IMG/VR virus record: IMGVR_UViG_3300032240_001991
Span: 1-64,000 of that record
Reading direction: 5' to 3' (one strand)
Length of the DNA: 64,000 nucleotides
Below the pieces are notes generated by a model. That model was given only the letters and a program-made list of their open reading frames with translations. It was not told where the DNA came from and searched no databases. Every line of letters starts with the position of its first letter. Within the stretch, counting starts at the first letter, position 1. The position numbers were made by a program, and so were the translations under genes. Shown one piece after another: positions 1 to 57,689 of the stretch.

Positions 1-825
1 CTTGGTCCATTAGGCCCATTAGGTCCAATTGGTCCACAGGGTGTTCAGGGCCCACTTGGTCCGTTAGGTCCAATAGGCCCGCAAGGTACTCAAGGTCCAA
101 TAGGCCCGCAAGGTACTCAAGGCCCACTTGGTCCAATAGGATTCTCAGGCAGTCAAGGCCGAGATGGCCCATTAGGTCCACTTGGTCCACTAGGCCCATT
201 AGGTCCAATAGGATTTATTGGTAGCCAAGGTATTGGTCCAATTGGATTTATTGGTAGCCGTGGACCAGTTGGTCCACTAGGTCCGCAAGGTACTCAAGGC
301 CCACTTGGTCCGTTAGGCCCAATAGGATTTATTGGTAGCTTTGGAAACCTAGGTCCTCTAGGTCCTGCAGGACCCGGTACTAGTATCAATGCTACTGCGT
401 CAACGGCGGCAGGACCCTTCTTTGTTGTAGGCGTATCCGCTGCTGGCGGAGCAACACCTACTATATCAACAACCAGTCCTATCTCATTTAACGCAACTAG
501 CGGTACATTAAGTGCTGTAATACTTAATGCTACCTCAGATATTAATAAGAAAGTTAATATTTCTCAAATTAATAATGGATTAGAAATTGTAAATAGCTTG
601 ACAGGTGTTAAGTTTAACTGGAAACAAAATCAACTACCAAGTGCGGGACTAATTGCACAAGAAGTTGAACAAGTTCTGCCAGAATTGGTGTCAATTGATC
701 CAGACGGCAGCAAGGCACTTAACTATAACGGTATAATTGGTGCACTAGTTGAAGCAGTTAAGAGCTTAACCACAGAAGTTAATTCGTTGAAGCTAGAAAT
801 TGTAAATATTAAGAAAGGAAAGTAA
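1..825 (+). CDS. Collagen-like tail fibre/spike protein, 3' part (5'-truncated), with C-terminal peptidase S74-like intramolecular chaperone
   Basis: Frame 1 is open from base 1 and reads GPL/GPI/GPQ Gly-X-Y triplets to ~375. It then reads TSDINKKVNI...LTGVKFNW...AGLIAQEVEQVLPELV...LNYNGIIGALVEAVK plus a coiled coil, typical of S74 chaperone domains. The ORF-track start at 598 is internal. Confidence 0.85.
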   Translation, partial: LGPLGPLGPIGPQGVQGPLGPLGPIGPQGTQGPIGPQGTQGPLGPIGFSGSQGRDGPLGPLGPLGPLGPIGFIGSQGIGPIGFIGSRGPVGPLGPQGTQGPLGPLGPIGFIGSFGNLGPLGPAGPGTSINATASTAAGPFFVVGVSAAGGATPTISTTSPISFNATSGTLSAVILNATSDINKKVNISQINNGLEIVNSLTGVKFNWKQNQLPSAGLIAQEVEQVLPELVSIDPDGSKALNYNGIIGALVEAVKSLTTEVNSLKLEIVNIKKGK

Positions 826-828
826 TGA

Positions 829-1698
829 ATGCCATCTAATATACTAACTGGCTCGCCCGGTGTAGACATAGATAATAAACTTGCTCCATATGTTACTGGA
901 GGTAGTTACGGAGCAATACCTGCTGCTGCTGCTACAGGTATAACATCTGCTACATTTGATCTTAATACTAGATTTGCAGCTATTGCGAGAGGTACATCTT
1001 GGACTACTGCAACCAATATACAAAAAGCCGGGGCTGACATTAATACTATATTTGCTGGAAAAGGAACCGCAGTACTATCGTTTACTTCTACACAGGCTAC
1101 TAACGCAACTCCAATTAGCGGAACATTTACTATACCAACTATTTCGCCATCAAGTAGTGCAACTCTAGTTGTATATATGGCTGGAGGTGCAGGCGGAGGT
1201 GGCGCCGGTGTTACAACTGGTGGTAAACCCAACACAAACTACGGTGGTGGTGGCGGAGGTTCGTCTGCAATTTATAGATTTAACTATTCATTAACTTCAG
1301 CAAATAGCAGTCAAACTATAACTTATACCGCAGGTGGAGCTGGAACAACATCAACTGTTTCGGGAGGTAGCGGTAATCCTGGAGCATCTAGTGCTATTAC
1401 GGGAGGAACATTTAGTCCTACTTTATGGAATATTCCCGGAGGGGGCGGTGGTGGTGGTGCAACGGTAGCACCTGCTGCTGGCGGATCAGGAGGCTCAGCA
1501 GGCGGAGGATCTACAACAGGCACTTTAGTTGTAGTTGGACAAGCAGGAACTGCTGGCGCAGCTGGAACAACTGGTACAGGAGGAACCACATCATCTAATA
1601 GTATCGTAAGCACAGGTGGGCGAGGAGGATCCTCTGGATCATTGTTTAATGCAACTACCGGAACCGGGGGCCTTGTTGTTTTTACAATACTTTATTAA
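829..1698 (+). CDS. Glycine-rich virion (tail-fibre-associated) protein
   Basis: GGAGGGG/GGGGGG runs and a C-terminal GTGGLVVF motif; directly follows the fibre gene. Confidence 0.65.
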   Translation: MPSNILTGSPGVDIDNKLAPYVTGGSYGAIPAAAATGITSATFDLNTRFAAIARGTSWTTATNIQKAGADINTIFAGKGTAVLSFTSTQATNATPISGTFTIPTISPSSSATLVVYMAGGAGGGGAGVTTGGKPNTNYGGGGGGSSAIYRFNYSLTSANSSQTITYTAGGAGTTSTVSGGSGNPGASSAITGGTFSPTLWNIPGGGGGGGATVAPAAGGSGGSAGGGSTTGTLVVVGQAGTAGAAGTTGTGGTTSSNSIVSTGGRGGSSGSLFNATTGTGGLVVFTILY

Positions 1699-1710
1699 AA
1701 TGGAAAATTT

Positions 1711-2028
1711 ATGTTAACAAAAATTAGCAATGTTAAACTATATTTTGGTCTTACTGACACAGGATTACCAGATTGTTATGCCTGTAGAGATATTTTAGAT
1801 CAAGAACAAATTAGTTATGATATTATTCATTATACTGATGCTGCTCAATATAGCTTTGTATTTTCAGCTATAAATTCGTGGGGACTTGGCGAAGTAACAG
1901 ATTTTCCTTTTGTTACATGGGACGAAGAGTACGACGATCGTCCGGGGGAAGGATTTTGTAATATGGCTATAGGATCAACAGCACTACAATCAAGCACATT
2001 AGTTCAAAATAAAGGATTAATTCTATGA
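1711..2028 (+). CDS. Glutaredoxin/thioredoxin-fold-like small protein
   Basis: CYAC (CxxC) near the N-terminus and an FPFV cis-Pro-like motif; paralog of 2025..2348. Confidence 0.45.
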   Translation: MLTKISNVKLYFGLTDTGLPDCYACRDILDQEQISYDIIHYTDAAQYSFVFSAINSWGLGEVTDFPFVTWDEEYDDRPGEGFCNMAIGSTALQSSTLVQNKGLIL

Positions 2029-2348
2029 GTAATTTAGTTAAAATTTCTAACGTTACTATGTACTTTGGAGAAAATAATTTTTCAGAGCAATTTCAATGCA
2101 AAAATTTCTTAGATTCTAATAATATTCTTTATTCAAAAGTTATGATTATGGCAAATCCAAGTGATTTCTTTACATCTATGAGTCAAAATGTGTTTGGTGA
2201 TCTTTTTACGATGTATACCTTTTCTTCTTTTCCTATAATCACATGGACTGAATATTATGACGACTATGATAGATTTGATAACGTTTCTCAAAGTTTTTCA
2301 GAATTAACAACTAGTACACTAGTTACAAATGCTTCTTTAATTCGTTAA
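2025..2348 (+). CDS. Glutaredoxin-fold-like small protein (paralog of 1711..2028, single Cys)
   Basis: Shares KISNV.(L/M)YFG and FP(F/I)(V/I)TW.E.YDD motifs; ATGA overlap. Confidence 0.45.
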   Translation: MSNLVKISNVTMYFGENNFSEQFQCKNFLDSNNILYSKVMIMANPSDFFTSMSQNVFGDLFTMYTFSSFPIITWTEYYDDYDRFDNVSQSFSELTTSTLVTNASLIR

Positions 2349-2354
2349 TATAGC

Positions 2355-3044
2355 ATGTCTAATCCTTTTGATTTTTTTGATGAAATTTATTGTATAAATT
2401 TACCTAGCTCTGTTGAAAGATGGAATACGGTATCAGAAACATTCACTAAGTTAGGGATAATGCCTCGAGTTAAAAGAATTGTAGCAAGACCTCCAGATGC
2501 AGATATAATACAGGCTACTCCTGAAGGGCTGTTAAGATTAGGTATAAATTTTAATCCTATTGGAATGCTGGGCTGTAGCTTAAGCCATCTAAAAATTTTA
2601 ACTAAAGTTTTGAATAATCGTTCAAGTAATGTTTTAATCTTTGAAGACGATGTAATGTTTACTGATGTTTTTTCTTTTGAAAAATTAAATAACGCTATTT
2701 TAGAATTACCACCAACTTGGGATATCTTATTTTTAGGTGCTGATCCTGTACAACCAACTTTAAAATATTCAGAAAATCTTATTAAAGTTACTCATACATG
2801 GGGAAGCTATGCATATGCACTCAATCAGAAATGTATTTCACATATTTGTACTACAACAATAGATAATCTTACACAAGGTGGGCTTGATTATTGTTTATCA
2901 ATTTTTAGTTCAGACCTACTAGAAAAATTTTGCATTACTCCGCGAATGTGCACAGATTCGCCAGGAGTAAGTACAATGGACGGAATTTATCATGACTGGA
3001 ACATTGAATCAAATGCCAGATGGAACGAATTTGTGCCAAAATAA
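2355..3044 (+). CDS. Glycosyltransferase family 25
   Basis: IYCINL...ERW, GCSLSHL, LIFEDD and WDILFLG motifs. Confidence 0.85.
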   Translation: MSNPFDFFDEIYCINLPSSVERWNTVSETFTKLGIMPRVKRIVARPPDADIIQATPEGLLRLGINFNPIGMLGCSLSHLKILTKVLNNRSSNVLIFEDDVMFTDVFSFEKLNNAILELPPTWDILFLGADPVQPTLKYSENLIKVTHTWGSYAYALNQKCISHICTTTIDNLTQGGLDYCLSIFSSDLLEKFCITPRMCTDSPGVSTMDGIYHDWNIESNARWNEFVPK

Positions 3045-3054
3045 ATTAAAAGAC

Positions 3055-3540
3055 TTACTTTACAAATTGTCCGTGTTTTATAAGAATAATTTTAGCATCA
3101 CCAGATAATTCAATATCGTACTCTCTTGGTTTTAAATAATTTAATGCTCTAAGCGTTTTTCTATCTCCTGTACATTTACCTAATACACAATAAGCACCTA
3201 TGCCTTTTGGTAAAATAAATGTATCAGTAAGCCTTATAAATTCTGCTGTATAAGGTTTATAACTTGAAAAACATAACCAAGTCGTATCCTGAGGAAATAA
3301 CTCGTATGTATCAAAATTTAAAACAACACTGGTGTTTAAAAAAAATTCACCTTCAAAGATGTTGTTTAATTGAGCTGTTTTAGTTCTATATTCTTCTAAC
3401 CTTCCTCTATACATATAAGTAGCAAATAAATTTTTATCATATTCTCCTTGTCCTACTTCCCATATTCGACTACTATGATCGTTATGACCAACGACATTAA
3501 CTACAAACCCTGAATATTGAACAGTTAGAGTAGAGATCAT
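3055..3540 (-). CDS. Hypothetical protein
   Basis: 161-aa ORF coupled (ATGA overlap) to the upstream GNAT gene. Confidence 0.6.
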   Translation of the reverse strand: MISTLTVQYSGFVVNVVGHNDHSSRIWEVGQGEYDKNLFATYMYRGRLEEYRTKTAQLNNIFEGEFFLNTSVVLNFDTYELFPQDTTWLCFSSYKPYTAEFIRLTDTFILPKGIGAYCVLGKCTGDRKTLRALNYLKPREYDIELSGDAKIILIKHGQFVK

Positions 3541-4139
3541 AACTCAAAACTAAGCGGTTTAGCTTGCCCTTTTATATGACCTGATTGATTTATGGGCGTT
3601 GAAAACATTTCTAAAGTACTTAATAAGATATTAGTTGTAACTTCGCTAGCTTGATCTACATTAATATCTTGTAATAGTTTTAACCTTGCTGCATAATGCA
3701 AATAATCGTTATTATAAAGAATACTGATATTTAACGAGGATTCAAAATCAAACTCATTGTTGCGCGCATCATATGTGCCAACGACAATGTGCGACATGTT
3801 TATAATTTTCTTCCATATTGAGTTTGAATTTTTAGTCATCATAAAATCATTAACTACTGTGTATTTTTCTTTTTCTAAAAGATATCTATAAAAAAATGTA
3901 CCAATTCCTTGATTTTGATATGAATTGAGAACATGTATTTCGTACGCTTTAACGCAGTTCTTATAATCACGCATCTTCATTAACCAAAAATATCCTATCA
4001 AATTTTCATTATCGTACATTCCGTAATATATAGAAATATCAGTAATTTTTCGTTTTAATAAAAATTTATTAAAGAATGCAACTTCTGTTGCTCCTAAGAA
4101 CAGTTGAGATGCTTCGTCAAAATTTCTGAGATCTGTCAT
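3537..4139 (-). CDS. GNAT-family acetyltransferase
   Basis: IHVLNSYQNQGIGTFFY acetyl-CoA-binding motif A; start placed at MTDLRN (TAATG overlap with upstream stop). Confidence 0.7.
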   Translation of the reverse strand: MTDLRNFDEASQLFLGATEVAFFNKFLLKRKITDISIYYGMYDNENLIGYFWLMKMRDYKNCVKAYEIHVLNSYQNQGIGTFFYRYLLEKEKYTVVNDFMMTKNSNSIWKKIINMSHIVVGTYDARNNEFDFESSLNISILYNNDYLHYAARLKLLQDINVDQASEVTTNILLSTLEMFSTPINQSGHIKGQAKPLSFEL

Positions 4140-5416
4140 TAACCACATAATTTTTTTAACTCTTCTAATGCAGTTTCTATGTTTTGATAAACTAAAATTT
4201 TATTTTTGCGCAACACACGTATTCCAGGCGAATTGTTATGCCTACATACAAAAGCTGCTAGTTTACCGGTTAATAACTTTGCTATTTTTTTAGCAAATTC
4301 TTTTTCTTTCTTAGGATCTTCTTGCCCTGTTAAAAATAAAATTATTAAAAACGCATCTATACTAGTCTCATCTGCTAATAAAGAAATAATCTGATACGTT
4401 TTTTCAGAAAATCCAGCCGAAATACCAATTAAATCTATAGGATTGTTAATTTGGTTATTTGATCGATTTAAAATTTCTTGTATTTTTTGAACATCCGTTG
4501 TTGATATGTCAGTTAAATCAAATCCTTTAATTTCAGACTCACCGGCAGCAATTACTCCAAGCCCTCCGGTGTCGGTTATAATCATAATTTTCTTCTTTTC
4601 TTTTTGAAAATTATTAATAATAAGTAACGCAAATTCTTGAAGTGTAGATGCAACAACTGAATCAGCAATATTAATATTACCTAATTTAGACCCAGTATGC
4701 AATAAAGATGCTCTTTTTGATGCATTAGTAATCTTTGGTGATAAAAGTATCAGCGGTTTTGTTAATTTTATAAACGGAAGATTTATGCTTTCTTCTAAAT
4801 ATATAGCAATAACTTTAGTATCTTGATCTAAATTTAAGTAATCAATCATTGACGGAACTAGCGAAGTTTGATTTCCAATAGAAATAATTTTTGAAAATCC
4901 TAGTCCTGATGATGTTGTCATGCGCTCATGAAGATCAGCAATTACTCCGCCGCTCTGGGATATCATCCCAACGCTACCTGATACTGGAGATATTATTGGT
5001 AAACATTGAAACTTTTTTGACCAGACTCCTGCACAATTTGGGCCAATAAGCATACTACCTGCTTGAGAAATTTTTGATTTTATTCTGTTTTCAATATCAT
5101 AATTTCCGGTCTCTCGAAAACCAGTTGTAATTCCAATGATAACTTTTGTTCCGTGATTTAACAACTCGTCAATAACGGTTTCAAACACATACAGAGGAAC
5201 GGTAACAATAGCAACATCAATCTTTTCAGGTATTTCAGAAATTGAAGATAAAGAACGCTGATTAAAAATTAGTTCTCTTTGACGATTAATAAGATATACA
5301 TTTTTATCTTCAGTGTTTAATAATACTTGTTCAGTAATCCAATTTCCCCATTTTGTTACATTAGCAGACGCACCTACAACTGCAACAGATTTTGGAGAAA
5401 ATAAAACATCAAACAC
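4139..5416 (-). CDS. NDP-forming acyl-CoA synthetase (acetate-CoA ligase) alpha-subunit-like, CoA-binding protein
   Basis: LFSPKSVAVVGAS, LIGPNCAG, ISQSGG, ISIGN, LHTGS (phospho-His position), TDTGGLGV and NNPIDL motifs; GTG start at 5416 overlaps the upstream stop. Confidence 0.85.
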   Translation of the reverse strand: MFDVLFSPKSVAVVGASANVTKWGNWITEQVLLNTEDKNVYLINRQRELIFNQRSLSSISEIPEKIDVAIVTVPLYVFETVIDELLNHGTKVIIGITTGFRETGNYDIENRIKSKISQAGSMLIGPNCAGVWSKKFQCLPIISPVSGSVGMISQSGGVIADLHERMTTSSGLGFSKIISIGNQTSLVPSMIDYLNLDQDTKVIAIYLEESINLPFIKLTKPLILLSPKITNASKRASLLHTGSKLGNINIADSVVASTLQEFALLIINNFQKEKKKIMIITDTGGLGVIAAGESEIKGFDLTDISTTDVQKIQEILNRSNNQINNPIDLIGISAGFSEKTYQIISLLADETSIDAFLIILFLTGQEDPKKEKEFAKKIAKLLTGKLAAFVCRHNNSPGIRVLRKNKILVYQNIETALEELKKLCG

Positions 5417-5981
5417 GAATAATATCCCATCTTGCAACAGTGTACGGAGCATTTAATCTAAAATGAGTTCCAATATGTATCTTAGTACGTACAAATCCTA
5501 ACTTTTCAAACATTTTGTCGTATTCTTCAACTGATCGATGATATACTCCATATGGGTATGGTATACCTCTATAAGACCTTTCCATAATTTCTGCTAATAC
5601 AACGGTGTTGGTATTTTCGCATAGCCTTAGTATAATTTGATCTATTTCTTGATCATTAACCAGATGAGGACCGTTAATAAACATAGTTGTTTGACAAGGC
5701 GGTAATTCTAAAAAATTCCATGGTAAAAATCTATAAGATGGGTTTATGCGGGTTGCTTTTTTAACTGCTGACTCGCATATATCAAACCCAATATATGTTA
5801 ACGGATTAAAATTTTTAGCTAATCGACCATACCCACATCCAACATCTCTAACTGGGGAATCCCCAACAAATTCCATAACCGCTTTTACATTTTCTTCACC
5901 TTCGTAATATTCGTGACCGGTTGACCAACGAAAATAATTAATTCCTTCAGTTTTCCAAAAATTTACATCTATAGAAGTCAT
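5409..5981 (-). CDS. Class I SAM-dependent methyltransferase
   Basis: VRDVGCGYGR motif I and YIGFDI motif II; ATGA overlap start at 5981. Confidence 0.8.
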   Translation of the reverse strand: MTSIDVNFWKTEGINYFRWSTGHEYYEGEENVKAVMEFVGDSPVRDVGCGYGRLAKNFNPLTYIGFDICESAVKKATRINPSYRFLPWNFLELPPCQTTMFINGPHLVNDQEIDQIILRLCENTNTVVLAEIMERSYRGIPYPYGVYHRSVEEYDKMFEKLGFVRTKIHIGTHFRLNAPYTVARWDIIRV

Positions 5982-6736
5982 AGCTGATCCCATCCTCTTG
6001 CTATTAAATTATTTTTAAAGTCAATAGGAATTCTATCTAACACATCTAATTCTAATTTTCTTAAAAGGTCAGGTGGCGGTAATTCTTTATTTTTTACAGT
6101 TTCATATGTATTAACTTTTTCTTGAGGAAGACTTGTAACTGTTGGGAGAGAAAAGAAATTTAACATATCATTAAAATGATTCACGTCTAAAATTTTGTCA
6201 ATATTTGTTTCCCAACACAACGATCCTTTCTCTTTTGCGTAATTGTAATAATACTGTGCTCTTTTTTCGCATTCGCATGCATACCAAAAACAAAGTTGAT
6301 AGGTATGCGCCTTTTCCCAATTAGCAAACGGCAAAACATTTGGTTCGTTTGGAATATTAAACCAGCACATATAACCAGGATGTTTTCCAGGAATCCAATT
6401 TAGTTGAAAAAGGCTTGATGCTATTTTTCTAGGATTCCTACGCAATATCACAATTGTTGGAATTATGCCAAAGTCGTAAAAATATTCAAGACATCCCTTA
6501 GATACTGATTGATCTGTATTTGTGTAAGTTTTTCCTGGTAATTGTTGAATGTAGTTAAGATGTTCCTTAACAAATTTTTTTCCAATTTCAGGATTTAAAA
6601 TGTTTGCCTGTCTTACTGAGCTAAAGCTAGGTTCTCTTTCATGTTCTGAAAAATTATTAGGAACTTGAGCAAACAATCTGCTAAGTAAAAAAGTTCCAGA
6701 TCTTCCTGAAGAAATTGTTAGAGTAATTGGTTTCAT
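5978..6736 (-). CDS. Sulfotransferase-family (P-loop) protein
   Basis: ISSGRSGTFLL 5'-phosphosulfate-binding-like loop and LRRNPRKIASS 3'-phosphate-binding-like motif. Confidence 0.65.
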   Translation of the reverse strand: MKPITLTISSGRSGTFLLSRLFAQVPNNFSEHEREPSFSSVRQANILNPEIGKKFVKEHLNYIQQLPGKTYTNTDQSVSKGCLEYFYDFGIIPTIVILRRNPRKIASSLFQLNWIPGKHPGYMCWFNIPNEPNVLPFANWEKAHTYQLCFWYACECEKRAQYYYNYAKEKGSLCWETNIDKILDVNHFNDMLNFFSLPTVTSLPQEKVNTYETVKNKELPPPDLLRKLELDVLDRIPIDFKNNLIARGWDQL

Positions 6737-7326
6737 TATATTTCAATATACGATGAGTTAGCAATTGGTTTTTGCAAAGGGTCATATGCAAAACAAGTTA
6801 AAGAATATTTAATTCCTCTTTTAAGAGTATCGGTATGATGCCGATGAGTGAGCACTCCGGGCCAAAAAATTGCAGTACCTACAGGTAAATCTTTTGTGTT
6901 AAAGTTTTGACGAGGAAAATATAAATCACACCCACTAAAATCGTTATTAAGTTTAATATTACAAGAAATTAGACCAATATCAATATGAGACCTAATTTTA
7001 ACTGCGGTATCTAGGCTATATCGAAGGAAGTACGGACTAAAAAGTTTAAGATCATAAAAGAACCATTCTTTTTTAAGAAGTGGAACAACTTTAGTAAGAT
7101 AGTGATTTTTAAATTCTACAGTAAATTCTTGATCAAATGTAATTGAGTTTAAGTAGTATGTACTAAAATTCATGTCTACAGGATCTGGCGCAAACTGATG
7201 TTTTTGATTTTCAAGTCTTTCTACTAAATCTTGACAAAATTCTTTTGTCCAAAAAGGACATATTAGAATATCGTCTTTAATAGTATATTCTCCAAAATTA
7301 GAATCAATGGCACTAGTGTAATTCAT
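6736..7326 (-). CDS. 2OG-Fe(II) oxygenase, PLOD/lysyl-hydroxylase-like
   Basis: PFWTKEFC, YFLRY, HID, CNIKLNNDFSG, WPGVLTHRH and GIKYSL; HxD...H facial triad. Confidence 0.8.
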   Translation of the reverse strand: MNYTSAIDSNFGEYTIKDDILICPFWTKEFCQDLVERLENQKHQFAPDPVDMNFSTYYLNSITFDQEFTVEFKNHYLTKVVPLLKKEWFFYDLKLFSPYFLRYSLDTAVKIRSHIDIGLISCNIKLNNDFSGCDLYFPRQNFNTKDLPVGTAIFWPGVLTHRHHTDTLKRGIKYSLTCFAYDPLQKPIANSSYIEI

Positions 7327-7928
7327 GGTTTAAGAACAAAACTAACACCTGACGGATCAAACCATTGAAGAGGCGGCCAAGAAAAAGATACAAACGTATA
7401 TTTTTTCCCTTTAGTAAGTTCAGTTACATAATGAGGATGAGTTAGCATTCCCGGCCATATCATTGCATAACCAATTGGAACATCTTGTCCGCAAAACTTT
7501 TGTCGAGGAAAATGTAACTCACAGCCTTCATAATCGTCGTTTATTCTCATGTTTATAGTAATAACACCTTCGTCTGTATGTTTTAAAAGATCTCGATTTT
7601 CGTCCATTGAATAACGAACAAAATATGGAGTAAAAACACCAGGGACGTCCATTTGAACTGCTCGTTGAATCATCCATTCTTTTTTTAACATAGGAATAAT
7701 ACTATTTTTATAATGATCGGCAAAAGATACGACGTAATCTCGTCCTATATCATTTAATCTTAGTATGCGCATGTCGTCATAGGTAGTAACAAATCGGTCT
7801 GAATACCTTTCACATGCCTCAACCATTTCGGCACAAAATTCCTTTGTCCAAAAAGGAGTCACAATAATATCATTATGGATTTCATATTTTCCAAAATCAG
7901 GATGCAGACCGCTGTGGTAATGATTCAT
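7323..7928 (-). CDS. 2OG-Fe(II) oxygenase, PLOD/lysyl-hydroxylase-like (paralog)
   Basis: PFWTKEFCAEMVE, YFVRY, HTD, ITINMRINDDYEG, WPGMLTHPH and GKKYTFVSF. Confidence 0.8.
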   Translation of the reverse strand: MNHYHSGLHPDFGKYEIHNDIIVTPFWTKEFCAEMVEACERYSDRFVTTYDDMRILRLNDIGRDYVVSFADHYKNSIIPMLKKEWMIQRAVQMDVPGVFTPYFVRYSMDENRDLLKHTDEGVITINMRINDDYEGCELHFPRQKFCGQDVPIGYAMIWPGMLTHPHYVTELTKGKKYTFVSFSWPPLQWFDPSGVSFVLKP

Positions 7929-7985
7929 ACCTTACTCTTTTAATAATATACCTATTTATTTTCTAATAAAAAAGAATAAAATATT

Positions 7986-8426
7986 TTAAATTAATTCTAG
8001 CAATAACTCTAACTTAGTTTTAATGATCTTATTTGAAAGAGAAGTCTTAACACCGCGATGCAAGGGTTTAGGCCATGCATCATAATCGCACCATGCATAT
8101 CCTTGATGTTCAGAATTTAATACAGGAATAAATTCTTTATCTACCAACAACACATAGGTATTATACTGAAATCTCTGGTCCCTACTAACAAATAACTCTA
8201 AGGGAATTACTTTACTAATAGGCGGAGGGTTGCCTACCTCTTCAGCTACTTCTCTCATAAGAGTATCGTAAGGAGTAAAATCGGTTGGATCTTTTTTGCC
8301 TCCAATCAGTCCCCATGTATTGGCTGTTTTTCCGTGTGCCCTTAATAGAAATAAAAATCGTTTAGTATCTTTAGCTAAAAATAATCCGCCTGCACAGTTT
8401 ATTTCTATCATAATATCATACGCCAA
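7986..8426 (-). CDS. NUDIX hydrolase
   Basis: WGLIGGKK....TLMREVAEEVG Nudix box. Confidence 0.85.
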   Translation of the reverse strand: MAYDIMIEINCAGGLFLAKDTKRFLFLLRAHGKTANTWGLIGGKKDPTDFTPYDTLMREVAEEVGNPPPISKVIPLELFVSRDQRFQYNTYVLLVDKEFIPVLNSEHQGYAWCDYDAWPKPLHRGVKTSLSNKIIKTKLELLLELI

Positions 8427-9850
8427 TCTGTATTTTCATAAACACCGTCGTAAGACTTAGACCATTGCTCACCATTCCATTTATATTGTATATTTGTATA
8501 TGCGTTTGTAATATAAGTTGTAGATGTAGTTACAGTAGAATCAAACAGCACCCACCATTGAGTACCATCCCATTGTATTATATCGTTGGCGTTTGCTTTA
8601 ATTCCATGGGGTTGTCCAGTAACAGGCGCTATACTACTCCATGCGTCTGGCCCTTCTACAGTATCATTAAGCACTACGTCATCTAGTATTAGATATCTTC
8701 GATCAATGTTCTGGCCAGAAACAGAATGAGGATTAAATGTCTGAGGATTTACAATAGCATCTATTGTTCCTCTACTATAAGTATCAGTATGATCAGTTAA
8801 AATAGTATTAGCAGGAACGGTATCAACGTCAACCGACAAGTTCATTAAACAGGCATTAAAAGGATTCAACGACATGTAAGCTACAATTTCATGACCGTCT
8901 GGTTTGCCTAATCTTAGTTGACTTAATCCCGATGTAAATTTGCCAGGATATAGGTCTAGAATGTTTAACCACGAAGGACGATTTGGAACATTATCTACAG
9001 TAACCCATCCCGTACTGACATTGTCTTCTCCTACTGGAACTAGAACAGCGACATTATCTAAAATTAATAACTTATAATCTTGAGGAGTAAGGGTAACCCT
9101 AGCAGTTGGTTCTAATCCTCCAAAGATATTTCCTCCATGAAGAGCATCTTCATATCCTCCTGCCTTGCCTGTGCCAACAGGCTCTTCAAATATATTAGCA
9201 ATAATTTTTGTAATAATGCCTAACTTCTTAACCTTTGCAGGAGGTGTGATCCAAATAGGTGCAGTAAACTGTAAGGTAGCAATACTTAGATCGTTATTAA
9301 GACCTTGTGGAACTGTTTTACTTTCAAAAACACTACCTTCTGTAATTTCTAAATAACTTAAACTAGTCCAGTCAACGTAGTTGTCTGTTGTTTGGATCTC
9401 CATACTAGGGTTAAACAACACTGTGATCTGTTCCCATAGCTGAAATTTTTGATCAGTATTAGTGGTCCAAATATCTGCATTAAATGTAATTACATAGGGC
9501 GTAGGCATTAAACGTTCGATGGTGTAATTTGCACCTTGTGTGTTTAAATATTGTTGATTAGCATCGTCAAATGCTCTTTCTCTAATATGCATCTTATTAA
9601 CATATGTAGGATTCTGCATTCTTGGGCGATCAAATTTTATATCTTTAATGTAACAAGCAATAAATGGAGCACTCTGAAGAATGTTTTCTGTATTTTTGTT
9701 TAAAATAGTTCCTACTTGTCGAGTCATGTCACCATAACGAACCGGAACTTGTATAATCTTTCCTGAACTATCTTTATAGGCAAAGTTACTCATTAATCTC
9801 ATAAACTGAGTTAGGTAGCGTTTTACCTGCCCGTCATAAAAATGTTCCAT
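8408..9850 (-). CDS. gp15: Tail terminator / sheath stabiliser, T4 gp15-like, with C-terminal extension
   Basis: HFYDGQVKRYLTQF, VPVRYGD, MPTPY..TFNADIW and QKFQLWEQI.VLFNP resemble gp15-family motifs; next to neck genes. Confidence 0.65.
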   Translation of the reverse strand: MEHFYDGQVKRYLTQFMRLMSNFAYKDSSGKIIQVPVRYGDMTRQVGTILNKNTENILQSAPFIACYIKDIKFDRPRMQNPTYVNKMHIRERAFDDANQQYLNTQGANYTIERLMPTPYVITFNADIWTTNTDQKFQLWEQITVLFNPSMEIQTTDNYVDWTSLSYLEITEGSVFESKTVPQGLNNDLSIATLQFTAPIWITPPAKVKKLGIITKIIANIFEEPVGTGKAGGYEDALHGGNIFGGLEPTARVTLTPQDYKLLILDNVAVLVPVGEDNVSTGWVTVDNVPNRPSWLNILDLYPGKFTSGLSQLRLGKPDGHEIVAYMSLNPFNACLMNLSVDVDTVPANTILTDHTDTYSRGTIDAIVNPQTFNPHSVSGQNIDRRYLILDDVVLNDTVEGPDAWSSIAPVTGQPHGIKANANDIIQWDGTQWWVLFDSTVTTSTTYITNAYTNIQYKWNGEQWSKSYDGVYENTDWRMIL

Positions 9851-23611: not shown

Positions 23612-25306
23612 ATGGACGCTATTGAACTTATTTCTCAGGACCTTTTTGATAAAGTACGCAGTCGTTTTACCAACCTAGAAATGGGCGACGAAAACGGAAA
23701 CGTAACATCAGATCCAAGGCAAGCACGTTTCTTTGATTTTAATTTTACTATGGAAGGAACCGATCTTGGTCGGGTTAGTATTAGTATTAACGAAAGAGGT
23801 GCTCTTAAGCTTTATTACGGAAAAGGAATTTTAGAAGGACACGAACCGGGGACACAAAAAATCTGGTTTAGTTTCTTAAAAGAAATGCGCATGTTTGCCA
23901 AACGCAGACTATTAAGATTTGATACTAGAGATATTACTAAATCAAACTTAAACAAAGAAGATTTTCAATTTTTAGCGTCAACCGGAAGTAAGGAAGATAA
24001 TATGTCAGAAAGCAAAATGTTTGGTAGTAGTAAAACTAGTCACCGCATATTAGAAAAAACACGTTTAATTATTCGCCATAGCAGTCCTGTAGAAGAAGGA
24101 CAACGTCATCGTAATATACATGCAATTTATGTAGAAAATGCTGACGGAGAACGTTTTAAATATCCGTTTATACATTTAACAGGTGCAAAAGCCATGCAGC
24201 GTCATGTGGCTAATGGCGGTAGACCTCACGATGTACACGGCCTAGCTATTGTTAAAATGAGCGAAGAAATTGCTCAACTTTCTGCTTTCAAGAGACATGT
24301 TGGTCACAATCATGATACTATGCAAAATGAAGCTAACGAAATTATGGAACGTGCATGTTCTAAACTTGAAAGCTTAAAACATATGATGGAAAGAGTCTGC
24401 GGACAACGTGGATACGAAGAATGGAAAGGTGCTAACGATACCTTTGAAAACAATGATGTAGTAATGGACGAAGCCACGTTAGAAAGTTACAAAGATAAAT
24501 TTACAGTTAGAAATTTTAAAGAAGATCTAGCACAATACTTCCCGCTAATACATAAAATTATGCAGGAAACAAGTGAAGTAGACCTCGAAGAATACGTAGG
24601 TGAAACTAAAGAAGAAACCTGCAATGAATGTGGAATGCTTGAAAGCAGTTGCGAATGCGACCACGAAGAAAAAGATGTTAAAGAATTTGCAGAATTTGAA
24701 AGTTGGGTCAGTAAAATAATAGAAAATCGTTTACCCGACGACGTACTTGATAAACTCAAAGACCTACTAAGTCAAGACACAAAAGCTGGATTAGATGGAA
24801 CAAATGCTGTTCAATCTTTAAAAGGCATTGGTATTGACGACAGTGAACTTGAAGACATGATCGATAAAGCCGGGCCAGAAGGCGACCTTAAAACCATCGT
24901 TAACATCTGGTTGAATAATAAAGGTGATAAAGAATCAATTAAGTATCTAGGTCTACAATCAACACAAAGTGCTCCTGCACCAACACCGCCTCCGCAGGAA
25001 CAACCTCCTGCAGGTGCTGAGCCGGGAACAAATCCTCCGTCTCCAGTTGAAGAAAAAGAAGATACCGAGGAAAATAAAAATCCTAGCTTAAAAGATATTG
25101 CAGAAATGGTAAAAAGTTTTTATGATAGAGAAACTGGTAAATTCCCACTAGGAGAAACTGGCGTTGTAACTAAAATTAGAAAAGAGCTAGGCGAATGGGC
25201 TGGAGACTTAGCAGAAAAATTAGTAAACAAGCTATCCAAAAAAGATGAACCATTGCATACCGAATCAATCGAAAGACTCAAATTTTTATCTGGTTTGAAA
25301 AAATAA
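23612..25306 (+). CDS. Large hypothetical protein (late)
   Basis: 564-aa ORF after a late promoter; acidic and Pro-rich linkers; C-terminal ERLKFLSGL. Confidence 0.65.
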   Translation: MDAIELISQDLFDKVRSRFTNLEMGDENGNVTSDPRQARFFDFNFTMEGTDLGRVSISINERGALKLYYGKGILEGHEPGTQKIWFSFLKEMRMFAKRRLLRFDTRDITKSNLNKEDFQFLASTGSKEDNMSESKMFGSSKTSHRILEKTRLIIRHSSPVEEGQRHRNIHAIYVENADGERFKYPFIHLTGAKAMQRHVANGGRPHDVHGLAIVKMSEEIAQLSAFKRHVGHNHDTMQNEANEIMERACSKLESLKHMMERVCGQRGYEEWKGANDTFENNDVVMDEATLESYKDKFTVRNFKEDLAQYFPLIHKIMQETSEVDLEEYVGETKEETCNECGMLESSCECDHEEKDVKEFAEFESWVSKIIENRLPDDVLDKLKDLLSQDTKAGLDGTNAVQSLKGIGIDDSELEDMIDKAGPEGDLKTIVNIWLNNKGDKESIKYLGLQSTQSAPAPTPPPQEQPPAGAEPGTNPPSPVEEKEDTEENKNPSLKDIAEMVKSFYDRETGKFPLGETGVVTKIRKELGEWAGDLAEKLVNKLSKKDEPLHTESIERLKFLSGLKK

Positions 25307-51981: not shown

Positions 51982-52215
51982 TTAGGCTGCGTGCTCTATA
52001 GCGGGCAGCGGAAACTCCTTACGCTGATAGTACTCTACCAGCTGCCGCATGATAACAGCGATCTGCTCGCCTTCTTCGCTAACAGTGAAGCGCACGGGAC
52101 TGTGGCGCCAGCTGTTGGTACGCATGAACTCTGTAAACAATCGACGGTGGCGGTTGTTGTTGACATCAAAGTGTGTGATGGGACGCACGGTGCGTGCTGT
52201 AGCAATGTTACGCAT
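51982..52215 (-). CDS. Small early hypothetical protein (paralog of 61612..61821)
   Basis: RP...FD..N..HRR.FT.FMRT..W.H.PVRF shared; own promoter. Confidence 0.65.
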   Translation of the reverse strand: MRNIATARTVRPITHFDVNNNRHRRLFTEFMRTNSWRHSPVRFTVSEEGEQIAVIMRQLVEYYQRKEFPLPAIEHAA

Positions 52216-52250
52216 AGTAGTTGTCCTGGGTTGTTATGTTAACGACTACA

Positions 52251-52279
52251 GTTATACAGTCTAGCCGCTGAGTCCGCAA
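52251..52279 (-). promoter_or_regulatory. sigma70-like early promoter
   Basis: TTGCGG-17-TATAAC. Confidence 0.55.
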
Positions 52280-52435
52280 TGGGTTTATGGGGTGGGCCCC
52301 ATAAAAAAATAACGGTTGCAGACCTGCTGATGAGATGCTAGCGGTGCCCCAGACGCCTACGGGAGGACGCGGGCTTAACACCGTGCGGGCAGGGTTGCAA
52401 GCAATATTTTTTTACGCAAGTGTAAAAAAATATAG

Positions 52436-52464
52436 TTGCACAAGCACTAGCATGGCGCTACTAT
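52436..52464 (+). promoter_or_regulatory. sigma70-like early promoter
   Basis: TTGCAC-17-TACTAT. Confidence 0.55.
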
Positions 52465-52505
52465 TAACGGGCTGCAATGTAGCAGCGCACTAGTAGTACA
52501 AGCAT

Positions 52506-52820
52506 ATGCAAACACAAGCACAAACAACAACAGCCACTGCGCCGCGCGTAAAGCGCAAGTATACAAAGCGTAGCCTGCGCATTGTTACCGCTAACGACGC
52601 CAACACTGCAACCGCTACTGCAAAGCGCAACAGCGCACTGCACACGCAGCGTATGTTAAACTTTGCTACTGCGCAAAGCGCACAGCAAATTAACAAAGCA
52701 CTGTATACAAGCAAAGTACGCTACCTGCAGGCCTGCATTGCGCACAACACAGCAATGCAGCAGTTGCAAGCGCAAATTACTGCGCACTTGCTAAACGTAG
52801 CAGCGCACATACAGTACTAA
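52506..52820 (+). CDS. Small basic early protein (no Glu, one Asp)
   Basis: 104-aa ORF between a promoter and a terminator hairpin. Confidence 0.55.
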   Translation: MQTQAQTTTATAPRVKRKYTKRSLRIVTANDANTATATAKRNSALHTQRMLNFATAQSAQQINKALYTSKVRYLQACIAHNTAMQQLQAQITAHLLNVAAHIQY

Positions 52821-52837
52821 CTGCTACTGCACTGCAC

Positions 52838-52873
52838 AAAACGCACACGCTATGCAAGTAGCGTGTGCGTTTT
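52838..52873. terminator. Perfect 15-bp hairpin, probable bidirectional terminator
   Basis: AAAACGCACACGCTA-tgcaag-TAGCGTGTGCGTTTT. Confidence 0.7.
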
Positions 52874-53455
52874 CGCGTCTGCCCGCTGCACACACTGCAA
52901 AACAACAACTTACGCGCTGGCTAGCTCTGGGGCGCGCTGATCTACTGTATATATGCACAGTAGCAAAACTTTGCAGTCGTTGGGCCTGGGGCACTGCTAA
53001 ACAAGTTTGTGCTGTGGTGAGCGGGCTGAGTGCACTCTGCTGGGGCATCAGCAATCCCATGAATACTGCAGATATCTGTACAACAATACAGTGTGTTTGC
53101 GTGCCTAAGCACAGTAATAGCCGCCCTAAATTAAAAATTTAAGCAGCAGTTTCTTTGTCGTAGTTGTGGGGCAGGATCGTAGGTCTAGTTACTACAAAGT
53201 AAGAGATCTTACCCGGTGGTCGTGGGGACATTAGAGGCCAAACGCGCAAAATTTTTTTACAGATCAGTAAATGCAGAGCTCTCGGTCATGGGGCGTGCAG
53301 ACCCCACTGATCGCTGGAATTAGGCCTAAGAGAGGGCGGTCTGCGGACCCCAGGCAGCAGAAAGCATGAGCAGAGGTTACCCCATAGTACCCAAAATACC
53401 AGCGAGAGATACCCCATGTTGCACAAAAAATCCAGCAAAATATCCCAGAAAACAG

Positions 53456-53483
53456 TTGCGTGCAGCAGCAAAGAGTGTATAGT
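53456..53483 (+). promoter_or_regulatory. sigma70-like early promoter
   Basis: TTGCGT-16-TATAGT with TG immediately upstream of the -10 hexamer. Confidence 0.55.
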
Positions 53484-53524
53484 AACTGGGCTGCAACGTA
53501 GCAGCGACACTAGCAGTAGTAAAA

Positions 53525-54082
53525 ATGCAACAAAACGACGTAGCGCAACAAGTAGCGCAGTTGTTGGCTAACACAAGCGTGACCTTTGCTTGTGTGGCCT
53601 ACAGCACCCCGGTTAAACTAGCGGCTAAAAACAAGCACTTAACTGTGCAGAAGCACACTGTGGCAAACGTGCAACTGTTTGCTAACATTAACGCAGCAAC
53701 CAGCGTGTACGCTAATGCAGTTAAGCGTAGTGCAGCCACACACACCACAAACAGCCCCGCAGCAGTCGCAGAGTTCGCTGCGCAGAGTAACTACTACGAG
53801 CACACTGACTGCTACAGCATTGTGCAGCATAAAAACAACAGTAACCTGTACTTGTACTGCATTTATAACCGCGCACGCAGCAGTTACACCATTGACGGCG
53901 CCCCGGCTAGCCGACAAGATGTAGCAGCCCTGCTAACACCCAGCGCAGCAGAGCAGTTGTTGCATAGCAACAACGTAGTGCATAATGCCGCGCATAACAT
54001 TACGCATAGCGTAATCGTGCGTACTATTGCACTTAGCAACATCAAGCAAATCCGTGCTCGCCGGCAGCAACTGACTTTTTAG
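53525..54082 (+). CDS. Early hypothetical protein
   Basis: 185-aa ORF with an upstream promoter and a downstream hairpin (54109-54137). Confidence 0.65.
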   Translation: MQQNDVAQQVAQLLANTSVTFACVAYSTPVKLAAKNKHLTVQKHTVANVQLFANINAATSVYANAVKRSAATHTTNSPAAVAEFAAQSNYYEHTDCYSIVQHKNNSNLYLYCIYNRARSSYTIDGAPASRQDVAALLTPSAAEQLLHSNNVVHNAAHNITHSVIVRTIALSNIKQIRARRQQLTF

Positions 54083-54217
54083 CAAAAAGCAGCAGCAGCT
54101 GGCGTTAGTAGTAGCGGGGCATCGCGTCCCGCTACTAGTGCTGAGTGCAGGAAACTTCGCCCAGCAAGGGTTCGTTGGGCTGGTGGGGTTTGCCCCAGAC
54201 TTCTCAGAAACCCAACG

Positions 54218-54246
54218 TTGACTACTGGTACTTTTTGCTATACACT
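54218..54246 (+). promoter_or_regulatory. sigma70-like early promoter
   Basis: TTGACT-17-TACACT. Confidence 0.6.
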
Positions 54247-54275
54247 AAACACATACAAGGACATAGGAGCCCACA

Positions 54276-54506
54276 GTGATTGCAACTATTGTGTATGCGC
54301 GTAATCCGCGCCAGCCTAATCCAATCGAAGGCTTTACCTCGTTCGCTCCCTCTGCTGCACACGCACAACGCCGCTTGCAGCAGTTGCAGCGCGACATTGC
54401 TTCCGGGCAGTGGCGTACTTGGACGGGTGAATCCCGGCGGCACTTCGTGGCTCGCGCACAGCGCAACGGCTGGGCGATTGAAGTCAAACAGGCTGTTATT
54501 GTCTAA
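54276..54506 (+). CDS. Small hypothetical protein
   Basis: AGGAG SD + GTG start. Confidence 0.55.
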   Translation: MIATIVYARNPRQPNPIEGFTSFAPSAAHAQRRLQQLQRDIASGQWRTWTGESRRHFVARAQRNGWAIEVKQAVIV

Positions 54507-54519
54507 CAAGGAACTGAAC

Positions 54520-54651
54520 ATGATCCGCAGCATACTAGATCAGTTTGCCAGCATCCCGCGTGATGAATGGCTGCACTTGGCGTCTTTGTTGTTCTTGTCG
54601 TTTGCAATTTCTGCTCTGCTTTACTTTGCACTGATGCTGTTGCTAAACTAA
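54520..54651 (+). CDS. Small membrane protein
   Basis: AAGGA SD; hydrophobic C-terminal helix. Confidence 0.5.
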   Translation: MIRSILDQFASIPRDEWLHLASLLFLSFAISALLYFALMLLLN

Positions 54652-54992
54652 CCCAAGTTTACACAAAGTTTTAAGCTGGCGCGCTCCGTAGCAGTATGGG
54701 GCGCGCGGCCTCACCTCTCCTGGCTCAAAAAATCTGTCTCTCTCAAAATGTAAACACTTACTGGTTCAAGGGGTATACCCCACAACCTAAGGTGGACCTA
54801 GTGCACAGTTTTTGTTTGTTAGTTCTAGTACGCACAACTTAGCAGTTGCCTAAACAACAAACTGTTAGCACACGCGATCTTCCAGTGATAGCGGGGTATG
54901 TGTGCCCCTATAGGCAGCTTGAAGAACGGCAACGGGCTTAAAAATTGTTATAGCAACGCTCACCGCACGCACACGTTAGCTCGGGAAACCAT

Positions 54993-55021
54993 TTGACCAC
55001 TATTCGTTGGCGTGTTATAAC
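54993..55021 (+). promoter_or_regulatory. sigma70-like promoter of csrA
   Basis: TTGACC-17-TATAAC. Confidence 0.6.
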
Positions 55022-55056
55022 ATAACTGCGTTTAACTTAAACAAGGAAGTCTGCAT

Positions 55057-55248
55057 ATGCTAGTGCTCACACGGCGCCCCGAGGAAGGCATCTGGCTGGG
55101 AGAAGACATCTGCATACGAATTGTTGCTATCAAAGGCAACCAAGTCCGTATTGCTATCGACGCCCCTAGTACAGTAAAGATACTGCGTACAGAACTATTA
55201 GACTTGACAGAAACTGTACAAAAACAGTTGACACACAAACACTACTAA
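55057..55248 (+). CDS. csrA: Carbon storage regulator CsrA/RsmA RNA-binding protein
   Basis: MLVLTRRPEEGI...I.IRIVAIKGNQVRIAIDAP.TVKILR.EL matches the CsrA consensus; AAGGA SD. Confidence 0.92.
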   Translation: MLVLTRRPEEGIWLGEDICIRIVAIKGNQVRIAIDAPSTVKILRTELLDLTETVQKQLTHKHY

Positions 55249-55256
55249 GGTACTAT
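55228..55256 (+). promoter_or_regulatory. sigma70-like early promoter
   Basis: TTGACA-17-TACTAT. Confidence 0.65.
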
Positions 55257-55262
55257 TAGCAC

Positions 55263-55418
55263 ATGAACACTGAACACGACGACGAAGAGCTTGACTACTA
55301 CAAGCGCAAAGTTGCTAAAGCGGATGCTACCCTGGATCTGCTGATTGACTGCTTGGGCATTGGCCTAACGCTGTTCGTTGCATACCAACTGTTTCAACTG
55401 GTTCGCGCTTGGCTATGA
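55263..55418 (+). CDS. Small membrane protein
   Basis: MNTEHDDEELDYY...LGIGLTLFVAYQLF; 51 aa, read manually. Confidence 0.5.
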   Translation: MNTEHDDEELDYYKRKVAKADATLDLLIDCLGIGLTLFVAYQLFQLVRAWL

Positions 55419-55627
55419 TCGACATCAACTTTGACCAATTACTGAAGTTAGCCTCGCGCTCCGGTAACAGCATGGTATCCCGCACAGAATGCTTTGGCTG
55501 CGGCAGCAAGCAACGCTTGACACTGACCAGTGATGCGGGTTATCGTCTGTGCCAGAGCTGCCAGGTTGAAGACCCGGAGCTGGCTGACAGTTTCCGTCCC
55601 GAACCTGACTTCTTCGAATACCGCTAG
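55415..55627 (+). CDS. Small zinc-ribbon protein
   Basis: CFGC...CQSC; ATGA overlap. Confidence 0.55.
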   Translation: MIDINFDQLLKLASRSGNSMVSRTECFGCGSKQRLTLTSDAGYRLCQSCQVEDPELADSFRPEPDFFEYR

Positions 55628-56037
55628 CACCACTTCCTCACCTCCTTCCTTCTTTTTCTGGTGCTAGTGCTTTGCGGGCTGCTTAGTAGCCCGCTTTTTT
55701 TTGACCGCAAATTCTGATCGCCATAGAAAGGACGTGGATCCATTCCTGATAAGAATCCATGTTCATGGCTAGCGGGGTATCCTAAGTTCTTACACCTTAG
55801 ATCAAAAAATCTAATCATCTTGTTGTTGGTGTGTAAATTTTAAGTCCGCTAAGTCTTTGATTTATAAGAGGCTGACCCCACAGAATACAGTTTGAATTGC
55901 CAAAGATCGGATAAGATCAGATAAGATATCTGCAGCGAACCTGGGGTAAAGAACGATCCTCTTAGACCCTCTCAAACAAATATGGTAAGTATGTAGATGC
56001 TCTCTTGGGGTTATTGGGCAGCATCTACATTAACTTT

Positions 56038-56065: not shown

Positions 56066-56069
56066 TTGC

Positions 56070-57389: not shown

Positions 57390-57393
57390 AGTG

Positions 57394-57684: not shown

Positions 57685-57689
57685 CGTAG

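Follow-up and report, generated by a model that had tools for sequence, protein, structure and literature searches.

Does a bacteriophage hydroxylate and glycosylate its own collagen-like tail fibre? The question is raised by the beginning of a 64,000-nucleotide stretch of DNA (the window), the first 64 kb of one 326,658-base virus contig (G000; IMG/VR record IMGVR_UViG_3300032240_001991). A sequence-only reading had noticed a Gly-X-Y fibre, a GT25 glycosyltransferase and two 2-oxoglutarate (2OG)/Fe(II) oxygenases with motifs of the lysyl-hydroxylase (LH) domain of PLOD enzymes, and had proposed that the phage modifies its own fibre. All four genes were found within 8 kb:

1-825, plus strand: collagen-like tail fibre, C-terminal 274 amino acids, with Gly-X-Y repeats at about nucleotides 1-420 and a Peptidase_S74 intramolecular chaperone at about nucleotides 535-690
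2355-3044, plus strand: stand-alone GT25 glycosyltransferase P0005, 229 amino acids (PF01755 40.7 bits, cut-off 24; FEDD motif)
6736-7326, minus strand: LH-type 2OG/Fe(II) oxygenase P0011 (HID...H; Lys at His+10)
7323-7928, minus strand: LH-type 2OG/Fe(II) oxygenase P0012 (HTD...H; Lys at His+10)

The observation was thus confirmed, whereas its interpretation was partly supported. The reading which we favour, tentatively and at slightly under an even chance, is a wider one: the region would be a fibre-associated protein-modification cassette of a jumbo T4-like myophage, in which hydroxylation is followed by sulfation and/or glycosylation.

P0011 and P0012 are intact paralogues of about 200 amino acids each with 39-40% identity. 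In a sequence search against all solved structures the sole significant matches were collagen lysyl hydroxylases. P0012 matched the LH domain of mimivirus L230 with an E of 8.3e-13 and human LH3 with 1.2e-7; P0011 matched human LH3 with 7e-4. An AlphaFold model of P0012 (40 relatives as input) had a pLDDT of 93.8. When it was compared with the PDB by Foldseek, ranks 1-15 were all L230 or LH3 (E 2.7e-13 to 9e-11, TM 0.69-0.77); bacterial and eukaryotic prolyl 4-hydroxylase (P4H)-type enzymes followed with E >= 8e-8 and a TM of about 0.5. Nucleotide- or DNA-modifying oxygenases of the TET/JBP or AlkB type were ruled out, as these families rank far below LH in the fold search. Sequence and fold searches therefore favoured PLOD over nucleotide- or small-molecule-type 2OG families, and a column-by-column alignment with LH3 and L230 bore out the motifs on which the original comparison had been based. 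The Fe(II) triad is formed by H117, D119 and H166 in P0012 and by the HID and THRH equivalents in P0011. Across 40 relatives both His residues of the triad are invariant, the Asp is nearly invariant, and a basic residue ten positions after the distal His (His+10) is conserved.

With L230 and the animal enzymes PLOD/LH1-3 the two proteins share the LH-domain fold (about 25% identity), the HxD...H triad, the basic residue at His+10 and an N-terminal helix motif with a conserved Cys (FWTKEFC). They differ from PLOD and from L230, a bifunctional collagen lysyl hydroxylase/glucosyltransferase, in that they are phage-encoded and stand alone, without a glycosyltransferase or accessory domain. In addition, they have a 2OG-binding Lys for Arg, the nearby collagen is devoid of Lys, and their operon contains a sulfotransferase, a methyltransferase and an acyltransferase. 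PHROGs assigned both to phrog_61 "2OG-Fe(II) oxygenase", a large phage family (E 1e-13 and 7.5e-12). By sequence and predicted fold P0011 and P0012 are of the lysyl-hydroxylase type; the corresponding activity is predicted.

Among solved structures P0005 comes nearest to human COLGALT1 (GLT25D1), a galactosyltransferase of collagen hydroxylysine in CAZy family GT25, and there to its catalytic GT25 domain. The two have the family and an aligned FEDD motif in common; P0005 differs as a single-domain protein of 229 amino acids. A profile built from close P0005 relatives matched the COLGALT1 GT25 domain with an E of 5e-10 and bacterial GT25 with 6e-7. The gap of just about three orders of magnitude is too small for the acceptor to be predicted from the sequence. 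Hydroxylysine may be the acceptor, as is indirectly hinted by relatives in which GT25 is fused to an LH-like domain and by LH-like neighbours in the window and in one further contig (L094).

How common is this combination in phages? A word-based protein search gave just two close relatives of P0012 and was followed by an exhaustive search with HMMER, in which 1.84 billion representative proteins yielded 546 clusters at E <= 0.001. Among the best-scoring 150 of these 546 clusters 56 are stand-alone (170-270 amino acids) and 77 have at least 300 amino acids. Ten long proteins were scanned. Seven consist of an N-terminal GT25, a central PLOD-type glycosyltransferase (GT_PLOD, PF25342) and a C-terminal LH-like domain; of the others, one has GT25 alone and two have just a weak oxygenase match. 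Judged by its domains, such a fusion is the whole animal pathway, i.e. hydroxylase, galactosyltransferase family and glucosyltransferase domain, in a single predicted polypeptide. The fusions are phage-encoded and adjoin gp13/gp14/gp15 or gp25/gp6 in marine T4-like contigs. They are also present in the cultured Synechococcus phages S-CAM9, S-PRM1 and S-8S53/55/56 and the Roseobacter phage CRP-6, annotated as hypothetical or as a generic oxygenase.

The collagens beside the fusions are rich in Lys. In CRP-6 (45-kb genome; L008 33029-36641, gp58-gp60) the sole collagen-like gene, gp60, is one gene away from the fusion; its product (Pfam Collagen 2.9e-46) contains 26 Lys, and every one occupies the Y position of G-A-K-G-Q-K-G-E-type repeats. 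In S-PRM1 (L009 13001-21845) and S-CAM9 (L010 12983-21842) a fibre is encoded three genes upstream of the fusion, with 23 and 22 Y-position Lys, respectively, in 59 triplets. In three IMG/VR loci (L074, L082 and L089) collagen open reading frames (ORFs) end 0-85 bases from the fusion gene; they encode 29, 102 and 65 Lys in Y, respectively. Across these six loci Lys occupies 26-46% of the Y positions (26-39% in the three loci from cultured phages) and occurs solely in Y. In about 150 control loci, i.e. about 70 stand-alone oxygenase and 80 phage GT25 loci, adjacency to a Lys-rich collagen was not seen once. That phages would hydroxylate and glycosylate collagen-like fibres is, at the level of the family, well supported by this comparative evidence.

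P0011 and P0012 belong to the same LH-like family as the fusions (27-37% identity) and share the Lys at His+10. Like the window genes, the fusions sit in structural/fibre modules of marine phages and have GT25 functionally coupled with a hydroxylase. They differ in that three activities reside in one polypeptide of 590-690 amino acids, whereas the window has split proteins of 229 and about 200 amino acids. The fusion-adjacent collagens are Lys-rich, those of the window Lys-poor. A tree of 136 domains placed P0011 and P0012 in the mostly stand-alone half, in a nine-member subclade (SH-aLRT 89) apart from the fusions. A search of the genome for GT_PLOD gave no match; the model was equally silent on control genomes.

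Is the association of fibre, GT25 and oxygenase in the window a coincidence? Oxygenase relatives are present in just 11 of 50,697 phage records, and in many relatives the oxygenase domain is fused to GT25 or has it as a neighbour; therefore, the combination is not due to chance. Because the genome has at least five collagen-like genes (Pfam model), nearness to a collagen gene is by itself weaker evidence: by our own rough estimate about a quarter of random genome positions lie within 7 kb of one.

Next, is the adjacent fibre a plausible substrate? Frame +1 is open until the stop codon at 823. The product matches Pfam Collagen (E 4.9e-16) and, C-terminally, the endosialidase-chaperone family Peptidase_S74 (E 1.1e-13); Gly-X-Y repeats with a C-terminal chaperone are the usual architecture of a trimeric phage fibre. 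Its triplets contain 26 Pro in X, none in Y, and no Lys. The remainder of this gene is probably at the other end of the contig (G000 325452-326657), where 104 further triplets are encoded with Pro only in X. This part was searched for Lys-Gly sites, as the sequence-only reading had suggested, and there were none. Both fibre parts, that in the window and the probable 5' part, are thus subject to the caveat that Lys is lacking and Pro is in X; altogether they have 0 Lys in about 145 triplets.

The assignment of the 5' part follows from the contig ends. Window position 1 and G000 position 326658 are both inside collagen-like repeats of the same style, and an in-frame join is missed by 2 bases. 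Therefore, a single repeat-rich fibre gene was probably split by a break in the assembly, and the genome is probably circular or circularly permuted. Yet the CheckV completeness estimate is low (36%), and IMG/VR classes the record as linear.

The narrow version of the proposal is that hydroxylysine is formed on the fibre at 1-825 and its 5' part and galactosylated by GT25, as by PLOD/COLGALT in animals and L230 in mimivirus. LH-type oxygenases, firm GT25 membership, the fusions beside collagen fibres of other phages and the presence of every element within 8 kb speak for it. Nevertheless, we regard it as very improbable. The canonical X-Lys-Gly substrate is missing from both fibre parts, the hydroxylases are encoded in a different, convergent operon, and the closest relative of the locus (L001/L097) keeps a hydroxylase without a collagen fibre or GT25. 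A Lys-free fibre is not a likely substrate of Lys hydroxylation.

Other collagens of the genome partly relieve the lack of Lys. About 700 genomic collagen triplets contain 14 Lys, all in Y and 13 of them in G-S-K-G, usually within G-Y/F-x-G-S-K-G-D-x-G. They are spread over four collagen-like proteins (G000 316507-320595, 83990-85180, 215924-217039 and 257559-259079). Nine of the 14, eight of these in G-S-K-G, are in residues 185-449 of the 1363-amino-acid protein at G000 316507-320595. On a circular contig, its gene would precede window position 1 by about 6 kb. Long GPLGPIG-type stretches contain no Lys. Such a sparse, stereotyped pattern would suit a site-specific modification. Pro in the X position is abundant in the collagen-like fibres of this genome.

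The four genes are embedded in two convergent rows. In the plus-strand row the fibre is followed by a Gly-rich protein, the two small paralogues and GT25; the order in the minus-strand row is NUDIX, P0012, P0011, P0010, methyltransferase, P0008, GNAT and P0006. According to this layout the hydroxylases are outside the fibre/GT25 operon and are not co-transcribed with the fibre or GT25. The further genes are:

829-1698, plus strand: Gly/Thr/Ser/Ala-rich protein P0002, 289 amino acids, no family match
1711-2028, plus strand: small protein P0003, 105 amino acids, CYAC motif, paralogue of P0004
2025-2348, plus strand: small protein P0004, 107 amino acids, tandem paralogue of P0003
3055-3540, minus strand: cassette protein P0006, all-beta bicupin-like fold, no invariant His
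3537-4148, minus strand: GNAT acyltransferase P0007 (library matches)
4139-5452, minus strand: acyl-CoA synthetase (ACS) alpha-type subunit P0008, nucleoside diphosphate (NDP)-forming (CoA_binding_2 + Succ_CoA_lig; HTGS motif)
5409-5993, minus strand: class I S-adenosylmethionine (SAM)-dependent methyltransferase, weak matches only
5978-6736, minus strand: sulfotransferase-fold protein P0010 (Atlas model), in relatives the partner most constantly met with the oxygenases and GT25
7986-8426, minus strand: NUDIX hydrolase heading the minus-strand row, absent from relative L001
8408-9850, minus strand: T4 gp15-like tail-sheath stabiliser, marking the structural module which borders the cassette

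The Atlas model of P0010 (pTM 0.88) resembles sulfotransferase clusters with a TM of 0.75-0.83 and feature scores of 0.95-0.98. A weak PF13469 match at residues 8-39 spans the SGRSGT loop, i.e. the N-terminal loop that binds 3'-phosphoadenosine 5'-phosphosulfate (PAPS). P0008 matches TIGR02717 (acetate-CoA ligase alpha) with an E of 2e-71 and PDB entry 2csu with 2e-38; its gene overlaps that of the GNAT by 10 bases. By sequence, the pair resembles a split Pat-type protein acetyltransferase. P0008 followed by P0007 repeats the domain order of the Pat/PatZ lysine acetyltransferases, and P0008 aligns with the N-terminal domain of Pat (E about 1e-7). The differences are that the parts are in separate genes, that ATP-grasp is absent and that P0008 is much nearer to true acetate-CoA ligase alpha subunits. 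P0002 is probably a fibre or tail-tip component. A possible link of the oxygenases to P0002-like Gly-rich proteins (a Gly-rich ORF upstream in 20 loci) was dropped because no significant alignment was obtained. P0003 and P0004 had no family match, with a weak hint of a thioredoxin-like SH3BGR fold.

Which of these genes stay together in relatives? In the closest one (L001/L097) one oxygenase (79% identical) is followed by sulfotransferase, methyltransferase, ACS-alpha, GNAT and bicupin, i.e. the window order is kept; the place taken by GT25 in the window holds a P4H-type oxygenase and an unrelated gene. L091/L092 contain a P4H-type oxygenase, a sulfotransferase and GT25. A 3.7-kb contig (L094) has GT25, a sulfotransferase and an LH-type oxygenase within 2 kb and no fibre on the contig. 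L093 has GT25 (52% identical), ACS-alpha, GNAT, two sulfotransferases, bicupin, a P4H-type oxygenase, the small paralogues and a tailspike. A 5-kb contig without a fibre (L179) carries an LH-type oxygenase (49% identical), an HD/MIOX-like gene, a radical SAM gene and a sulfotransferase. Finally, a 176-kb T4-like contig (L181) has a fibre, ACS-alpha, GNAT, a sulfotransferase, bicupin, a small paralogue and then gp13-gp15; its cassette is placed between fibre and gp13-gp15 as in the window. Relatives of P0003/P0004 travel with the cassette, and those of P0006 are kept, in L001, L093 and L181.

Thus, ACS-alpha, GNAT, sulfotransferase and bicupin are the core of the cassette. The core adjoins fibre or tailspike genes in all four long contexts, with a gene order that is shuffled among relatives. 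LH-type or P4H-type oxygenases, GT25 and methyltransferases are variable members. The hydroxylase slot holds either an LH-type or a P4H-type enzyme, both of which are peptidyl hydroxylase types, and the sulfotransferase is the steadiest partner. Dioxygenase and sulfotransferase are paired beside the fibre in the window (5978-7928) and also in L001, L094 and L179; close P0005 relatives adjoin a cassette-type sulfotransferase in L091-L094. The cassette genes were absent beside 80 IMG/VR oxygenase loci and beside 80 more distant phage GT25 loci.

There is a precedent for this gene company. In bacteria, operons of a dioxygenase and a sulfotransferase, with or without methyltransferase and acetyltransferase, were predicted to act on collagen-like or tail-collar proteins encoded with them, first by hydroxylation and then by sulfation (Iyer, Abhiman, de Souza, Aravind 2010, PMC2938197). 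The window shares all four enzyme types and the proximity to collagen-like/tail-fibre-type proteins. In contrast, the bacterial operons contain beta-hydroxylase and PhyH families, often with a PAPS synthetase, whereas in the phage the dioxygenases are LH-type, a gene for PAPS synthesis is lacking and GT25 is present.

A number of observations weigh against fibre modification by the cassette. As to the enzymes, the residue at His+10 is Lys (GKKY, GIKY) in P0011, P0012 and most phage relatives including the fusions, and Arg in LH3 and L230. LHs are recognized by an Arg ten residues after the distal His that binds the C5 carboxylate of 2OG, and P0011 and P0012 do not have it. Lys fills the 2OG-binding role in prolyl 4-hydroxylases; therefore, catalysis is still possible. 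A Pfam scan gave no oxygenase model above the cut-off (P0011, only OGFOD2-like with 18.1 bits, cut-off 31; P0012, nothing), and an NCBIfam scan of both proteins gave no family. Searches of the genome for an APS (adenosine 5'-phosphosulfate) kinase and for ATP-grasp_5 were negative, i.e. there is neither a gene for PAPS synthesis nor an ATP-grasp (beta) partner for P0008. As to the substrate, the adjacent fibre is free of Lys, and in the genome's collagens Lys occupies 2% of the Y positions compared with 26-46% beside the fusions. As to the relatives, the fibres that neighbour the L001/L097 operon (314 and 1040 amino acids) have no Gly-X-Y, and its 18.8 kb contain no GT25. The cassette core of L181 occurs without oxygenase or GT25, and in L179 radical SAM and HD/MIOX genes are beside the oxygenase. 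Around about 70 stand-alone oxygenase relatives in viral contigs virtually no collagen gene is closer than 10 kb and the cassette genes are lacking, and a 280-kb phage contig (estimated to be 79% complete) with a stand-alone relative has no collagen run. Because stand-alone relatives are encoded in collagen-free phage DNA, collagen cannot be the sole substrate of the clade.

The sequence-only reading had named as evidence against itself that relatives lacking collagen fibres keep the cluster. In L001/L097 this is in part the case. For self-modification of the fibre speak the LH-type enzymes, the fusions and neighbourhoods of GT25 and hydroxylase, and the six fusion loci beside Lys-rich collagens; locally, the Lys-free fibre, the separate convergent operon and the stand-alone clade speak against it.

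Could the product be a small molecule or a glycan of the host envelope, such as lipopolysaccharide (LPS) or capsule? Hydroxylation, sulfation, acylation, methylation and glycosylation would then be directed at something other than protein. The proximity of fibre genes would merely reflect a hypervariable region, and the purpose might be to block superinfection or to keep virions from re-adsorbing to debris. LPS biosynthesis is the pathway for which GT25 is best known, and relatives are annotated accordingly. The bicupin P0006, whose nearest folds include the small-molecule enzymes BacB and AerE and which also resembles HutD, would fit, as would the core without any hydroxylase in L181. Further, NUDIX, radical SAM, HD/MIOX and CoA-ligase-type proteins are typical of metabolite pathways, and the cassette region is a low-GC island (30-32% compared with 36-44% around it). 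On the other hand, in fold and sequence the oxygenases are nearest to peptidyl-lysine hydroxylases by a wide margin, the P4H-type enzyme that takes their slot is likewise peptidyl, the fusions of the family adjoin Lys-rich collagens, and the cassette is beside fibre or tailspike genes in 4/4 long contexts. We consider such a pathway possible, but less likely than fibre modification.

Alternatively, the hydroxylases might act on host or phage non-structural proteins, e.g. translation factors or ribosomal proteins, in the course of host takeover and without relation to fibres. Some bacterial P4H-type enzymes hydroxylate translation factors or ribosomal proteins, and the P4H structures matched by the P0012 model include an enzyme that modifies EF-Tu (5v7y). 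Moreover, most stand-alone relatives are not beside collagen genes, one is located between portal and prohead protease genes, and the ACS-alpha/GNAT pair resembles Pat-type acetyltransferases of cellular enzymes. This reading is unlikely in our view: the cassette is conserved beside fibre genes, and the constant pairing with sulfotransferase and GT25 fits the decoration of a surface protein better than intracellular regulation.

We return to fibre modification. What is established are the genes present, the family and fold of the oxygenases together with their intact catalytic residues, the assignment of P0005 to GT25, the sulfotransferase fold of P0010 and the conserved neighbourhoods. From these we infer, as follows, which substrates are used, in what order the steps run and what reaction each enzyme catalyses. 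The oxygenases would use Fe(II), 2OG and O2 to hydroxylate lysines in X-Lys-Gly of virion fibre proteins. The new hydroxyl would be O-sulfated by the neighbouring sulfotransferase and/or O-glycosylated by GT25; host PAPS is proposed as the sulfate donor because the phage encodes no APS kinase. As options, further groups may be added by the methyltransferase and the ACS-alpha/GNAT pair. The likeliest collagen substrates would be the 13 G-S-K-G sites in the four other collagen-like proteins, eight of them in G000 316507-320595. Non-collagen fibre proteins might be substrates as well.

The phage is a jumbo T4-like myophage. Its structural genes, among them the gp15-like sheath stabiliser at 8408-9850 and a 564-amino-acid structural protein at 23612-25306, put it among the large T4-like myophages; the latter has distant matches (about 26% identity) in PA5oct- and RaK2-type jumbo phages. 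A megablast of window positions 1-8000 against phage records gave zero matches, and a promoter and terminator scan gave chance level only. One further oxygenase is encoded in the window:

59112-59762, minus strand: P4H-type oxygenase (2OG-FeII_Oxy_3), 49% identical to the P4H-type gene in the L001 cassette region

It is 51 kb away from the cassette, inside a region (52000-64000) with about 49% GC as compared with 33-42% for most of the remaining window. This region has mostly short ORFs, many on the minus strand, and the only tRNA of the window, tRNA-Lys UUU (60487-60562); it gives the impression of a module that was acquired separately or consists of early genes. Altogether the genome has at least three such further P4H-type 2OG oxygenases (2OG-FeII_Oxy_3), the other two at G000 190040-190690 and 190940-191200 (plus strand).

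In two T4-like marine contigs (L006/L007) a stand-alone LH-like oxygenase is located between the portal and prohead-protease genes, and the same 20 kb contain three tryptophan-halogenase genes and two other 2OG oxygenases. This layout recalls the cyanophage dioxygenase/halogenase clusters described by Iyer et al. 2010 (PMC2938197). In marine IMG/VR contigs (L011-L073) stand-alone LH-like oxygenases often have other 2OG-oxygenase-like paralogues, fibre-like proteins and Gly-rich proteins as neighbours, which suggests that islands rich in oxygenases are widespread near the fibre genes of marine phages.

To our knowledge, hydroxylation and glycosylation of collagen Lys outside animals is established for mimivirus only. 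A literature search found no paper on lysyl-hydroxylase-type enzymes, or on collagen Lys hydroxylation/glycosylation, in bacteriophages, and none on the fusions beside Lys-rich collagen fibres in cultured phages. On our best reading of sequences and models the system of the window would be collagen-type Lys modification in a split form, embedded in a phage sulfotransferase/acyltransferase cassette. Marine and environmental phages might then own a chemistry of collagen/fibre Lys modification in two forms, as one-polypeptide fusions with Lys-rich fibres and as a split form with sulfotransferase/GT25; this generalization is conceivable, and we view it with some doubt. In the split form, if true, hydroxylysine of fibres would bear O-sulfate and/or a sugar, which could tune host recognition or protect the fibre. 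We know of no collagen with such a split-form modification of hydroxylysine.

If fibres are modified in this manner, receptor binding or stability could not be predicted from the fibre sequence alone, and many marine-phage genes now annotated as "2OG-Fe(II) oxygenase" would gain a function. Small stand-alone lysyl hydroxylases and GT25 enzymes would possibly be useful for the production of modified recombinant collagens. Since cultured phages have complete fusions by Lys-rich fibres, the general hypothesis is directly testable by mass spectrometry of virions. The evolutionary origin of PLOD and COLGALT would then be open to study in simple cultured systems such as S-CAM9, S-PRM1 and CRP-6.

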